Source: Wallemia ichthyophaga EXF-994 (lineage: Eukaryota; Fungi; Basidiomycota). From it: a stretch of DNA of 32,000 nucleotides. Shown here in pieces: positions 11,218-31,504 of the stretch. The notes under the pieces were generated by a model. It had not been told where the DNA came from. It saw only the letters and a program-made list of their open reading frames with translations, and ran no database searches. Both the position numbers and the translations under genes were made by a program. Position 1 is the first letter of the stretch, and every line of letters begins with the position of its first letter. The stretch lies in NCBI RefSeq assembly GCF_000400465.1, contig NW_008806287.1, positions 300,001 to 332,000 of the forward strand. The letters are read 5' to 3'.

Positions 11218-12516
11218 CTACGCGGACAGACGCTCCAACACCTCCTCGATGGCGTCAACAGCGCGTGTAAGGATAATTACCTGGTTTGTCAGCAGCGACT
11301 GCAGCATGACGAGCACACTCTCTCTAACAGTGTCTCTGTTAGCGAGGAGTGTCTTGAGGGTCTGCGACGTGCTCATAGCCTTATTCTCGAGCATGTGAAA
11401 GAGTGCAGCGTGGAGATCGAACTCGATGTCCTGGTTAGTAGAGGGGGAGTCATCGAGAGTTTGCAGGCTGCATGCGCCTTCGTCGCTGATGTTCTCATCA
11501 GCCAGTGAGCGCATCAAGAAGCGCAATCCCACTGGCATGTTCTGCGTAAGTGAGAGGTTGAATGTGCATAGTGAGCCGTCTTCAAGCAATAGATTCCACT
11601 TGCGTAAAAGGTCTTGCTTGCGCTGCGAGAAATCCATACCGGCACCGGCACCTACCTTGAATGGAACTATGTCGTACTCAAGGTTGTCAACAGCGAAGCC
11701 ATAAGCTAGAAGGAGCTCATTGGTTGCTTTGGCCCCGTAGTTGTTGAATACCTCGCTACCCTCTAAGGCACCGTGCGGCAGACTGATGGCTATTTTGGAA
11801 GTGCGTGTATAGATACTATCCTTCCACACCACTGCCGACATGGGCTTGTGGTTGCCTATGTCCCACAGAGGGACGAGCATCGGTGTGCTACTGCCACTCG
11901 TATTATCACTGCTACTCATGCTCGTGTCTGCATTTCTGCTCCCACTCCCGCTTATCAGTTTCGAGGGGAAGGAGCGTGAGGAGAGCATAGTGAGAGAGTG
12001 CTTGAAGACATCGTACGAAAATGACGCTAAACCATTAGATGCCAGCCAATCGGTAACGACGACGTAATCCCTTTGCCATTGCAACTCTCGCTCCCGCGTT
12101 GTGTTGTACAGACTCGTCGGCTGCGTGTACTCGAGCTCGGTGGGTGTCCAGTAGAGAGTCGTCAGCGTGCTTCCTATTGGCTGAAGCATAGCGACGTATG
12201 CGCGGTGCTTCAGTGCTCTTTGCAGCGAGTCGGGTTGGTTGTCGTAGTTGTAGTGCAGCGCTAGGTATACGACTACGAGGATATCCTCTCTTAGTGGCGT
12301 GTAGCTCAAGGCGTGGAACAGCTTCCTGCAGGAATCACGCGTTATGCACACACCCTCTGTCACACTGACTATCTCTGTCTCCTGCGCTATGTCTTTCTTC
12401 GCTATCCAACTGTAGCCAGATTGGGGAGAGTACGCAATGTCCATGTCGTCGTGTAGTTCACAGCCATTCTCCTTGAGCCAAGCTTTGAAGTTGTGGATGG
12501 TGGTAGTACGAGACAT
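11218..12516 (-). CDS. SET-domain protein lysine methyltransferase (SETD3/Rkm/Efm1-like class)
   Basis: FKAWLKENG N-terminus, SSRSFP, PLWDIGNHKP, EVFNNYG.K...LLLAYGF; intronless 432 aa. Confidence 0.88.
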   Translation of the reverse strand: MSRTTTIHNFKAWLKENGCELHDDMDIAYSPQSGYSWIAKKDIAQETEIVSVTEGVCITRDSCRKLFHALSYTPLREDILVVVYLALHYNYDNQPDSLQRALKHRAYVAMLQPIGSTLTTLYWTPTELEYTQPTSLYNTTRERELQWQRDYVVVTDWLASNGLASFSYDVFKHSLTMLSSRSFPSKLISGSGSRNADTSMSSSDNTSGSSTPMLVPLWDIGNHKPMSAVVWKDSIYTRTSKIAISLPHGALEGSEVFNNYGAKATNELLLAYGFAVDNLEYDIVPFKVGAGAGMDFSQRKQDLLRKWNLLLEDGSLCTFNLSLTQNMPVGLRFLMRSLADENISDEGACSLQTLDDSPSTNQDIEFDLHAALFHMLENKAMSTSQTLKTLLANRDTVRESVLVMLQSLLTNQVIILTRAVDAIEEVLERLSA

Positions 12517-15045: not shown

Positions 15046-15053
15046 TTATATAT
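15046..15053 (+). promoter_or_regulatory. TATA-like element upstream of the permuted tRNA
   Basis: TTATATAT, 32 nt before the first base of the tRNA 3' half. Confidence 0.55.
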
Positions 15054-15085
15054 CAGTTCGAAATAATTCAATGGGAGTAGCTGAT

Positions 15086-15161
15086 ATCGAAAGGTTGCAG
15101 GTTCGAGCCCTGCGTCGGTCACCACGGCCGGCTGGCTCAATGGTAGAGTATTCGACTACGG
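15086..15161 (+). tRNA. Circularly permuted tRNA-Arg(ACG): 3' half (15086-15121), CCAC linker, 5' half (15126-15161)
   Basis: The halves reassemble into a full 72-nt cloverleaf. Acceptor GGCCGGC/GTCGGTC + A73; D-arm GCTC-AATGGTA-GAGT; anticodon stem TTCGA/TCGAA with loop CT-ACG-G|A; variable AGGTT; T-arm GCAGG-TTCGAGC-CCTGC. Confidence 0.9.
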
Positions 15162-15168
15162 CTAAAAC

Positions 15169-15178
15169 TTTTGTTTTT
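15169..15178 (+). terminator. Pol III oligo-T terminator
   Basis: TTTTGTTTTT starting 8 nt after G37 of the tRNA 5' half. Confidence 0.7.
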
Positions 15179-15603
15179 ACTGTCCATTTTACAGCTCTAC
15201 CGGAATTATCTTTACAGACGCGTTATTATGGGCTAATATTTATATATTTTTGAGTTGCGCGTCTTCAACTAAACGCTTCTTTTCTTTTCGTTGATTTCAT
15301 GTATAAATAAGCTCTTACGCGTGCGCAAGTGTAAGCTAGACGCGCAAAAAGTTAAACAGATAGCAACAAAGACTTAGTGCTAAAACGTGGATCTATTTTT
15401 ATATGCATGTTCCTGCTTTGAATTGGTGACATGCACAATTTATGTCGTAGGAGCAGCGAACAATGCGCAATGCGCAACGCGTTAGTGTAGAATAATTAAC
15501 AAAAAACCTTGATACACTATTTTAAAAAGAGATAAATTTTGACTTTGTTTTCATGAACTGATTTCACCACTGTCTTCTTGAATAACATCAACGATAAACC
15601 AAA

Positions 15604-23661: not shown

Positions 23662-25587
23662 TTACAACTCAAACCCTTCCGTACTCAACTTCTCCTCAAA
23701 TGTCAACACCTCAAACACCAACCTACGCCATATCTTGATAGCAGCCGTCTTTGAGTCTTCAAGCATCACGGGCTCAAGCGTCTCCACAAATTCATCTATA
23801 CCTTGCTTTGATTTGAGCTGATCGCTCACAATTTCCATCATTTCTTCATCAGCTTCTCCGAAATACTCCTGCATCAGTGACTTTGTAATGGGTATGAGTC
23901 TCTTTGAGATAATTGCATCTGTTATAGCATCCCAATTCACATCAAATCTGGATAACGATGTGTAATCTTCTGGGACATCGTTAGCAATTTCTCTCAATCG
24001 CACTCTTCTCGCAGCCTCTCTCTGCTCCGGCGTGAGATCATCTTTGTCTGGAACAATACCGCTGTAGTCGAGTTTGACAAGTTTGCGCTTTTGTATTGTC
24101 TCGCCGTTTTCATCAACCTCCTCATCGTTGAATGCTGTGGTACGTGCTGCTTGCTTGGATGGCTCCGCCGTCTCAGTATATTGGGTGGGCTGAGCGGCTG
24201 CTGACAATCTAATCGGCATACCGTCATCCATCAAAACACCTCTCTTCTTCTGCTCTTTAGTGAAGTTCTCCATATCTCTAGCTTGTTGCTCTAAGAAAAC
24301 TTCAGTGTCTCTCTTAACCTTTTCAGATTCGTTTACTTCCGCCACTTTATCTGCTTCATCTGCGGTCTCTTCTTTCCGTCTAGCTTGTGAGCGTCCATTT
24401 CTCCATTTGCGTCTAAAGCATGTAAGTTAGGTGATGTAAAGAACGGCACACCCACCTGTTCACGTAGAACAGTTCATTCTTTTCAGCTAGTTTATCATCG
24501 TCAACTGCTAGTAGCTTATGTAATGCACTCTCCCTCGCGCTAGTGTCAGAGCTATCATTTGCCCTTTCTCTTGCAAGATCTCGATCATATTCATTTAGTC
24601 TTGCTCTCTCCTTCCCTTCAAACTTGCGTTCACGGTCTCTGAAAGCCAGTTCTCTATCTCTAGACCTCCTGGACAGACGATCTTTTTCTGATTTCTCATC
24701 TTGCTCGGCCATTGACAAGGCTTGCTCTAAGGTCATTGGCAAGTCTTCAGATCTGTCTTGTTGATGGCTAGAAGACGACCTTACGAAGCCGACAGGTTTA
24801 TTGAATGACTGTGGATCATTAACATTGGAGCCACTGATACCGCTTCGACTACCCCACTTTCTCATGTTAGATTTCTGATCGCGTTCTCTTTCTCTCTCAG
24901 CCTGATCTCTCTCCAAACGCTCTTTATCGCGCTGCTCTTTCTCCTGTCTCTGCACCTGCTTAGATTTGACAGCAGGGTTTACCATAGTGCCTGATCTGAA
25001 CATTTCGATCATGTTGAGTGTCTCCTGTCTATGAGCCTCAGGTATCTCCTCTGGAGGTAAATCACGAAGGTGGGCAGGTGTATCGTCTGCTATAGGAACT
25101 GCATTGTTCATATTAGGGCCTCTAGCGTATAGGTTTGGATCTGACATGTGATCCAGTATCTTTGCTATCACTTCCTCTGCTCTGTGCTCCTCCAATTCCT
25201 CATCGTCTGTTTTAAGCAGAGTCTTCTCGTAATCGTCTAGAAATGCTCTCGTTTTCTCGTCTGGCTTCACCAGCAGATTCTTGCGTGGTTGACCGCGTTC
25301 ACCAGCGGGGACTGACACGCCATTAAGCGTTTTGATTGCTCGGAGTACACTATCTGGCTCGGCAAACGTCGCGAATCCAAAAGCCTGTGGTTTGCCTGTT
25401 GGGCCTCTAACACGATTGAGAGTAACGAGATTTCCGGCGGCCTTTGATATTTGATTAGAGGGAATTATAATTGAGGTGGTACTCGATATGGTACACTCAC
25501 ATTCAGTAATCTATCCAGCCACTCATCACTTACGCCTGCACTGATACTACCCACAAATACTGTGAGCTTCTCGCTACCTGGGACCAT
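23662..25587 (-). CDS. RRM + charged region + PWI splicing factor (RBM25/Snu71-like)
   Basis: RRM LTVFVGSISAGVSDEW...PQAFGFATF, an R/E/D-rich middle, and PWI-like C-terminus EYFGEADEEM...LEPVMLEDSKTAAIKIWRRLVFE. Introns 25442-25500 and 24413-24455. Confidence 0.87.
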
Positions 25588-31391: not shown

Positions 31392-31504
31392 CGTCAGCTG
31401 TAGGATTCGAACCTACGCACTACAAGAGTACTTGATAGTATGCTTTGGAAGAACTCCACTTATGAAATTCTAATCAAGCGCCTTAACCACTCGGCCAAAC
31501 TGAC
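31392..31504 (-). tRNA. tRNA-Ser(AGA) with 31-nt intron (31437-31467)
   Basis: Acceptor GTCAGTT/AGCTGAC + G73; D-loop GAGTGGTTAA; anticodon stem CTTGA/TCAAG with loop TT-AGA-A|A; long variable arm; GTAGG-TTCGAAT-CCTAC. Confidence 0.93.

Follow-up and report, generated by a model that had tools for sequence, protein, structure and literature searches.

A family of circularly permuted tRNA-Arg(ACG) genes in the basidiomycete Wallemia, with a CCA-containing linker in one clade

Background

Here we analyse a window of 32,000 nucleotides (nt) from the salt-loving basidiomycete Wallemia ichthyophaga EXF-994 (contig NW_008806287.1, positions 300,001 to 332,000), in which a tRNA-Arg(ACG) gene is encoded with its two halves in reversed order and with the bases CCAC between the discriminator A73 and G1. 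Two questions are raised by this locus, namely whether such an arrangement is a working gene and where its CCA comes from. An earlier reading made from the letters alone (the sequence-only reading) had proposed that the gene descends from a CCA-matured, intron-containing pre-tRNA which was circularised, reverse-transcribed and opened within the intron. On the comparative evidence given below, we put at roughly 0.8 the probability that the locus belongs to a small functional family of permuted tRNA-Arg(ACG) genes in Wallemia, the CCAC being read as a product of slippage and gene conversion.

Layout and identity of the gene

The circularly permuted gene occupies positions 15086-15161 of the window on the plus strand. 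Its encoded order is ATCGAAAGGTTGCAGGTTCGAGCCCTGCGTCGGTCA-CCAC-GGCCGGCTGGCTCAATGGTAGAGTATTCGACTACGG, that is, 36 nt of 3' half (positions 38-73), the 4-nt linker and 36 nt of 5' half (positions 1-37), with the following parts.

15086-15121, plus strand: 3' half, tRNA positions 38-73, with the anticodon-stem 3' strand, variable loop, T arm, acceptor 3' strand and A73
15100-15110, plus strand: B box GGTTCGAGCCC, in the T arm
15114-15120, plus strand: acceptor 3' strand GTCGGTC, followed by A73 at 15121
15122-15125, plus strand: linker CCAC (CCA at 15122-15124, extra C at 15125)
15126-15161, plus strand: 5' half, positions 1-37, with the acceptor 5' strand, D arm, anticodon-stem 5' strand, C32, U33, ACG and G37
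15126, plus strand: G1, followed by GCCGGC
15133-15148, plus strand: A box TGGCTCAATGGTAGAG, in the D arm
15158-15160, plus strand: anticodon ACG, with G37 next

When 15126-15161 is joined to 15086-15121, the resulting 72 nt are called tRNA-Arg(acg) by ARAGORN with a complete cloverleaf, having stems of 7/4/5/5 bp, a 7-nt anticodon loop CUACGGA and the discriminator A73. The standard tRNA elements T8, G18G19, U33, the T loop GTTCGAG and A73 are all read in the rejoined halves, and the break between the halves lies at 37/38, exactly the canonical intron site. The order of the halves, the short spacer at the acceptor end and the cloverleaf obtained on rejoining are those of a permuted gene in the sense of Soma et al. 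(2007). In the encoded order, ARAGORN reports 0 genes on the window, and the Rfam tRNA model misses the permuted gene, its sole match over the window being a tRNA-Ser at 31392-31504. The sequence-only reading had placed A73 at 15121, CCA at 15122-15124, the extra C at 15125 and G1 at 15126; these positions are exact, and the permuted tRNA gene that it described is genuine, judging from the cloverleaf after rejoining and from the conservation across Wallemia.

Conservation and concerted evolution of two loci

On the whole, at least two permuted loci are present per genome, locus A adjoining the gene for HMG-CoA synthase (HMGCS) and locus B near tricalbin, and both are read in W. hederae. Besides the copy in the window, locus A is found in the following fetched sequences (L-numbers).

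L003-L006: four further W. ichthyophaga strains; body identical, linker CCAC
L007, 9216-9291: W. hederae; body with two compensated pair differences, linker CCAC
L001, 9232-9304: W. mellicola; body identical to W. ichthyophaga, linker A
L008, 8783-8855: W. mellicola-type (ENA metagenome contig); body identical to W. ichthyophaga, linker A

The permuted gene is identical in the five W. ichthyophaga genomes, and 72 of the 72 body positions are the same in W. ichthyophaga and W. mellicola, the HMGCS coding DNA being 82-86% identical between these species (~18% divergence). Leaders and trailers are unalignable between species and essentially random beside the conserved 72-nt body. The four stem changes in W. 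hederae come as two pair-preserving doubles: in the anticodon stem 28:42 has turned from U-A to C-G, and in the acceptor stem 3:70 from C-G to A-U. Both fall in helices that bridge the two halves, and the W. hederae 3' half differs from that of W. ichthyophaga solely at these two compensated positions. All 21 of the 21 stem pairs are formed in every sequence, while a shifted pairing register yields 26-45%.

Locus B of the W. mellicola type was obtained by querying metagenomes once with a 26-mer of the 5' half; this returned a single contig (L013) with a permuted copy at 384-456 and no canonical copy. Its body and linker are the same as in W. mellicola, and its flanks and neighbours are wholly different from those of locus A. 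This metagenome contig is assigned to W. mellicola from synteny and one protein cluster, its tricalbin open reading frame (ORF) falling in the 90%-identity cluster of W. mellicola tricalbin. In W. hederae, locus B (L021, 5947-6022) has hydrophobin, a mitochondrial carrier, a Rab5-like GTPase and tricalbin as neighbours and is syntenic with L013, which shows that locus B is older than the split between the two clades described below. The W. hederae sequences L007 and L021 are different contigs of one assembly, GCA_004918325.1.

Both W. hederae loci have in common the hederae-specific pairs, the linker CCAC and a T-rich 3' flank that is almost the same over about 75 nt; their immediate trailers differ, and locus B also has a T16 to G change in the D loop. 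Both W. mellicola-type loci have the ancestral stems and linker A. The sharing of species-specific pairs, linker and 3' flank within W. hederae indicates that gene conversion homogenises the paralogues, linker included. For locus B of W. ichthyophaga, a hand-spliced W. hederae Rab5 cluster and a shared exon cluster led to the outgroup (see below) alone, and the locus was not retrieved. A regular expression for B box then A box and the covariance model R1, run over the fetched loci for other permuted tRNAs, matched the Arg loci alone. In addition, short-read contigs (Logan, k = 31) of three Wallemia species (L009, L012, L014 and L015) have their position 1 inside the 5' half, at T8, G9 or G10, as expected if the 31-mer C7-G37 is repeated in the genome. 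From the starts at G9 and G10, a third locus may be suspected in the W. sebi complex, its trailer likewise starting with C or CT.

Linker states across the genus

The linker is CCAC in the five W. ichthyophaga genomes and at loci A and B of W. hederae, and a single A between A73 and G1 at W. mellicola locus A (L001 and L008) and at the W. mellicola-type locus B (L013). In an HMGCS tree rooted with a relative of ~32% GC, the genus splits into two clades: clade I comprises W. ichthyophaga, the species of the truncated contig L012 and W. hederae, with CCAC read in W. ichthyophaga and W. hederae, and clade II is the W. mellicola / W. sebi complex, with the single A. The basal split of the genus in this tree separates CCAC from A. 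The linker of CCA plus C noted in the sequence-only reading is confirmed, being constant in one Wallemia clade; the retention of CCA among related linkers, which it had made the test of its account of the origin, fails in the orthologues and paralogues of the W. mellicola clade.

The outgroup is a ~32% GC fungus represented in several ENA metagenome assemblies, nearest to Wallemia for HMGCS with 83-87% protein identity. No permuted tRNA is found there upstream of HMGCS (L002), near tricalbin (L017-L020) or near Rab5/Mito_carr (L022-L031); the covariance model R1 gave nothing further in 260 kb, and a search for the outgroup aminotransferase gave a 1.5-kb contig alone, too short for use. With no outgroup copy at the three syntenic places, neither CCAC nor the single A is favoured as the ancestral linker.

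From W. ichthyophaga to both W. hederae loci CCAC is unchanged, while leader positions -1/-2 and the trailer from +2 differ, which suggests that CCAC is probably under constraint in clade I. CCA itself is dispensable for function, because clade II has A73-A-G1. The two linkers also differ in how they close the acceptor stem: CCAC makes a loop of 5 nt, with which the full 7-bp stem is possible, and a 1-nt linker makes a loop of 2 nt, for which G1-C72 must open. On this structural modelling, linker length alone may be what is selected. Canonical intron-containing genes of these fungi, namely tRNA-Ser(AGA) in the window (G73 then AAT) and tRNA-Val(AAC) in W. hederae, have no encoded CCA.

Signals for expression and splicing

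Around the body of the gene in the window, the following elements are read.

15047-15053, plus strand: TATA-like element TATATAT, a candidate upstream RNA polymerase III (Pol III) promoter by consensus resemblance, 33-39 nt upstream of A38
15078-15085, plus strand: leader end, of which UAGCUG (15078-15083) pairs with C35-G37 and the first three trailer bases
15162-15178, plus strand: trailer CUAAAAC, then the Pol III-type terminator TTTTGTTTTT (15169-15178)

Loci A and B of both W. hederae and W. mellicola likewise have TATA-like ATA(T/C)A motifs, 33-62 nt upstream of A38, and a run of 4-8 T starts within ~20 nt after G37 at every locus in every species. By sequence resemblance, the usual internal promoter, with A box before B box, gives way at all loci to a TATA-like element upstream and a T-stretch downstream.

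The leaders carry a further signal. Among five independent leaders, position -3 from A38 is always G and positions -5/-4 are always pyrimidines, with -2/-1 variable. Leader positions -5 to -3 are complementary to C35-G36-G37, and another possible partner of the -3 G is C32, which would give the classical anticodon-intron pair; in the window this invariant base is G15083. In the predicted fold, AU at 15084-15085 and A38 make a 3-nt bulge at the 3' splice site, which across the predicted folds lies in a 3-nt bulge or an internal loop. Leader-trailer helices of 11-13 bp, built from unrelated sequences, are found at W. mellicola locus A, L013 and W. hederae locus A, where 5/1000, 1/1000 and 21/1000 leader shuffles, respectively, reach the observed duplex energy. 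For W. ichthyophaga, 12/1000 shuffles reach the energy, with the anticodon included. Such helices are present and are significant in three of the four tested loci. A strict bulge-helix-bulge (BHB) register, with 32-35 pairing to leader -3 to -6, was judged by eye and rejected, as it forms 2/4 pairs in W. ichthyophaga and 1/4 in W. mellicola locus A. As modelled, the junction has the structure of an ordinary eukaryotic intron with its loop cut open. The canonical tRNA-Ser(AGA) of the window (31392-31504, minus strand) serves as a control, with a 31-nt intron at 37/38 and A at -3 opposite U32. The idea of the sequence-only reading that the gene was opened within an intron fits here in that the break is exactly 37/38 and the leader end resembles an intron 3' end.

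These data bear on two other accounts of the locus. Silence of the tRNA finders is what a pseudogene or dead rearrangement product would give, for instance two tRNA fragments joined by chance; the body, however, is perfectly conserved amid random flanks, the bridging helices are kept by two compensatory double substitutions, the two loci are syntenic in two clades, and terminators and leader motifs are conserved. The conserved body and compensated helices exclude a pseudogene, and that account is effectively refuted by the comparative data. The locus might instead encode a stable tRNA-like non-coding RNA used unprocessed, in the manner of Y RNA or YrlA, with a tRNA-like module on a stem of its 5' and 3' ends. 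YrlA (RF02553) is indeed the one Rfam family that recognises the encoded order (36.6 bits, E = 2.5e-6), it has a similar permuted order of T arm, closed acceptor-like stem and D arm on a terminal stem, and leader-trailer stems exist in Wallemia. Yet the score is about half the gathering score of 69, the family is bacterial and Ro-binding with no anticodon arm to rejoin, and the terminal-stem sequences of Wallemia are not conserved at all. Moreover, the strict conservation of the anticodon-loop halves (CUACGG and A), the compensated anticodon stem and the full tRNA-Arg cloverleaf would have no reason in a Ro-binding RNA, and we regard a YrlA-like product as very improbable. The low-threshold Rfam search gave, besides this sub-threshold YrlA match, two chance matches, idnO and SNORA13. 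A demand for the tRNA is also apparent: 54% of the Arg codons in the window ORFs are CGU, CGC or CGA, which implies that tRNA-Arg(ICG) is needed in quantity.

Proposed maturation of the transcript

A pathway for the permuted transcript can be modelled on that of the algal permuted tRNAs, where it has been demonstrated (Soma 2014 review). Transcription by Pol III would start downstream of the TATA-like element and stop at the T-run, giving an RNA with leader, 3' half, CCAC, 5' half and trailer. The body would adopt a cloverleaf fold, with A73-CCAC as the loop that closes the acceptor stem, and base pairing of the leader with the trailer, and of both with the anticodon, would resemble an intron with an opened loop. 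The tRNA splicing (Sen) endonuclease may then cut after G37 (37/+1) and before A38 (-1/38), and tRNA ligase would join G37 to A38 into a 76-nt circle, which RNase P would open before G1. The CCAC tail would finally lose its last C to leave a ready CCA end or, alternatively, be cut back to A73 with CCA re-added. The sequence-only reading had suggested the former ending, RNase P cleavage before G1 and removal of one nucleotide, and this would be a coherent reading of the linker. It is known that tRNase Z is blocked by CCA. The acceptor stem (15126-15132 with 15114-15120) starts with G1-G2 and holds two G-U pairs (2:71 and 6:67), and tRNAs starting with G1-G2 and having such acceptor stems are substrates for CCACCA addition by the CCA-adding enzyme. 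The linker CCAC equals the first four bases of the CCACCA tag, a match to which we attach a presumed, speculative link only.

Origin of the linker

Read together, C72-A73 and CCAC (15120-15125) are the triplet CAC twice over without mismatch, (CAC)2. Starting from a 1-nt linker C (GTCACGG), a single duplication of this triplet in tandem yields GTCACCACGG; a deletion in the opposite direction is no harder, and one further substitution leads from the linker C to the clade II linker A. One slippage indel therefore interconverts the 4-nt and 1-nt linkers with no RNA intermediate, and the extra C is explained as well. Our preferred reading is accordingly a minimal founding junction, with CCAC and C/A interconverted by one CAC slippage indel and spread between the paralogues by gene conversion. 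To an origin of the CCA by secondary slippage we would give somewhat less than an even chance; a smaller part goes to the RNA relic considered next, and the rest is undecided or lies with other origins.

The CCA may instead be the relic of an RNA: a CCA-tailed, end-matured and intron-containing pre-tRNA would have had its ends joined, by circularisation or by template switching of reverse transcriptase (RT), and would have undergone reverse transcription and integration with the break within the intron, the W. mellicola clade later losing the CCA. The CCA stands directly after the discriminator, where the canonical tRNA genes of these fungi have none; the halves are split precisely at 37/38, and the 3' end of the leader is intron-like (-3 G and the anticodon complement). 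In both clades a processed-type 3' end (A73 or A73-CCA) and one base precede G1, and the junction is far shorter than the 5-85 nt of algae, a length that a tandem DNA duplication with a terminator inside would hardly leave. Slippage removes CAC as readily as it adds it, and RT-based models have been proposed in the literature for permuted tRNAs. Against this history, the sister clade has no CCA at either locus, the tree does not settle the polarity, the extra C is unexplained unless non-templated, and a retrocopy would have had to gain a promoter, a pairing leader and a trailer. Fungal tRNA ligase joins a 2',3'-cyclic phosphate to a 5'-OH, not a CCA-3'OH to a 5'-phosphate, and we know of no enzyme that would circularise a CCA-tailed pre-tRNA, which also counts against it. 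Nor is a source of RT evident. The sequence-only reading had invoked a nearby retroelement, a claim which we could not uphold: no RT, integrase or gag domain occurs in the tested ORFs or annotated genes of the window. Domain searches of every ORF of >= 150 aa, and of the smaller ones tested beyond the NCBI-annotated part, gave ordinary cellular genes or no match at all, and neither the NCBI gene models over 5604-27051 nor the annotated genes of L003-L006 include any of these three domains. The repeats in the W. ichthyophaga genome paper amount to 1.67% and are entered under tandem repeats and DNA transposons; nowhere does the paper use the word-stem 'retrotranspos'. No target-site duplications or A-rich tail were noticed in the flanks of the gene, where no dedicated search was made and which are too diverged for their survival to be expected. 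Altogether, we find the RNA relic a doubtful origin for the CCA. Of the proposal for reverse transcription of a CCA-tailed RNA, the permuted gene, the break at 37/38 and the CCA plus C stand, while CCA ancestry is not demonstrable and slippage suffices. For the permuted junction itself the matter is different: a mature-type 3' end and one base before G1 in both clades would favour some joining of RNA ends over tandem duplication, and such an origin of the junction may be considered attractive.

It is also conceivable that the CCA arose by chance or as a neutral by-product and plays no part in origin or processing, CCAC persisting only through gene conversion and for want of time to diverge. 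The sister clade gets by with the 1-nt linker A, and gene conversion between the loci is evident; under uniform base composition, a random 4-nt linker would start with CCA with a chance of ~1/64, a prior which is raised since a CAC duplication creates CCA automatically. However, the constancy of CCAC beside changing leader and trailer bases suggests constraint, and linker length likely matters, given that the 5-nt loop permits the full 7-bp stem and the 1-nt linker opens G1-C72. We think a mere by-product unlikely. At the other extreme, Wallemia would decode its major Arg codons CGU, CGC and CGA only via permuted genes, the family would have been founded by RNA-mediated joining of processed tRNA ends, and CCA(C) would be a preserved RNA 3' end, its extra C being non-templated or a second-round nucleotide of the CCA enzyme, with the CCA used directly as the mature end once RNase P has cut and one base is removed. 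This combined picture is, in our judgement, unlikely.

Several points weigh against our own reading of a functional family with a slippage-derived CCAC. The slippage is argued from parsimony and the tandem-triplet pattern, and with two clades and no outgroup copy an ancestral CCAC would be equally parsimonious. The leader-trailer pairing of W. ichthyophaga is short, with a helix of just 6 bp (UAGCUG with CGG and CUA), and the best leader helix of W. mellicola locus A lies upstream of the expected TATA-directed start. In the predicted folds a strict 3-4-3 BHB is not formed, and the 5' cut site is within a helix or borders on one. The pathway from transcription through the circular intermediate and the mature 3' end to charging is inferred, and the essentiality of the permuted genes, which hinges on canonical tRNA-Arg(ACG) genes elsewhere in these genomes, is conjectural.

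Host and genomic setting

The window comes from W. ichthyophaga, being 99.9% identical over 21.4 kb to the assembly GCA_004918015.1 of this species. Its ORFs are fungal, including an AA9 lytic polysaccharide monooxygenase, a P450, HMG-CoA synthase (with Wallemia as nearest match), NPL4, an SPX-RING protein, PRMT5 and PCNA. The permuted gene sits in a spacer of ~900 bp between an aminotransferase/CS-domain gene and HMGCS. The gene order round locus A differs between W. ichthyophaga/W. hederae and W. mellicola (L001 and L008), with NPL4, lipase, P450 and the AA9 block rearranged; the adjacency of aminotransferase, tRNA and HMGCS is retained in W. mellicola despite the rearrangement. An exact look-up of the lipase ORF of the window gave no match.

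Between the tRNA terminator and the HMGCS start there are a perfect 10-nt inverted repeat, TTGCGCGTCT / AGACGCGCAA (15255-15264 / 15338-15347, arms 73 nt apart), and ACGCGT(TA) boxes repeated at 15218-15223 and 15477-15482; these may be HMGCS promoter elements. Three long ORFs have no Pfam match, namely 11218-12516 (minus strand, 432 aa), 23662-24345 (minus strand, 227 aa) and 24413-25318 (minus strand, 301 aa). All W. ichthyophaga strains have the one of 432 aa as an annotated gene, and W. hederae appears to have kept it as well.

Relation to known permuted tRNA genes and implications

Algal-type permuted tRNA genes have been described in Cyanidioschyzon merolae (Soma et al. 2007), in the prasinophytes Ostreococcus and Micromonas and in the nucleomorph of Bigelowiella natans (Maruyama et al. 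2010). Like them, the Wallemia gene has its 3' half upstream on the same strand, a junction at 37/38 (the algal 'type II' class), an upstream TATA-like element, a downstream T-run and leader-trailer pairing, and its expected route would pass through a circular intermediate opened by RNase P. Unlike them, its host is a fungus, that is, an opisthokont, the intervening sequence is 1 or 4 nt instead of 5-85 nt, the junction is of the eukaryotic intron type (-3 G / C32 and an anticodon-leader helix) without a strict BHB, and several loci of one isoacceptor evolve in concert. None of the eukaryotic permuted genes described encodes CCA, whereas Wallemia clade I does. With an encoded CCA and a linker of 4 or 1 nt, the Wallemia locus is a variant and not a typical eukaryotic permuted gene.

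A closer likeness in the linker is seen in tRNA-iMet and tRNA-Tyr of Thermofilum pendens (Chan, Cozen and Lowe 2011), where an encoded CCA is followed by a 7-nt and a 1-nt intervening sequence, respectively, the latter having the same layout of CCA plus one base as W. ichthyophaga. In other respects they differ: the host is a crenarchaeon, a CCA being encoded in many archaeal tRNA genes in any case, the T-loop junction 59/60 has a strict BHB, each gene also has a canonical intron, and there is no sequence relationship. With the ordinary tRNA-Ser(AGA) and W. hederae tRNA-Val(AAC), the permuted genes share the splice position 37/38, a purine at -3 that could pair with 32 and a T-rich terminator, but ordinary fungal intron-containing genes have the normal exon order, the A box upstream of the B box, no CCA and a closed 31-nt intron loop.

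Reviews of 2014 and 2026 place permuted genes solely in algae, a nucleomorph and T. pendens, the eukaryotic ones without encoded CCA. In the literature searched, we found no report of a permuted tRNA in fungi, basidiomycetes, opisthokonts or Wallemia, nor of a eukaryotic permuted tRNA gene encoding CCA. The features that appear to be new are the fungal host, the minimal linker, the CCA encoded in one clade, the non-BHB junction of intron type and the concerted evolution of several loci.

Were the family founded through RNA, the reverse-transcription model for the origin of permuted tRNAs would have its first molecular fossil in this linker, and if the encoded CCA is used directly, this would be the first eukaryotic nuclear tRNA to mature without a CCA-adding step. 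The two natural linker states, CCA plus one base and 1 nt, at orthologous loci provide a handle on the origin, by joining of RNA ends or by DNA duplication, and comparing them is relevant to the action of RNase P and of the 3'-end enzymes at a closed acceptor loop and to the use of encoded CCA in eukaryotes. Standard tRNA annotation overlooks a putative major tRNA-Arg gene in Wallemia genomes. A conserved multi-locus family in a culturable basidiomycete would extend permuted tRNA genes to opisthokonts, and would show that the ordinary fungal tRNA-splicing machinery, independent of BHB, can support permuted genes.

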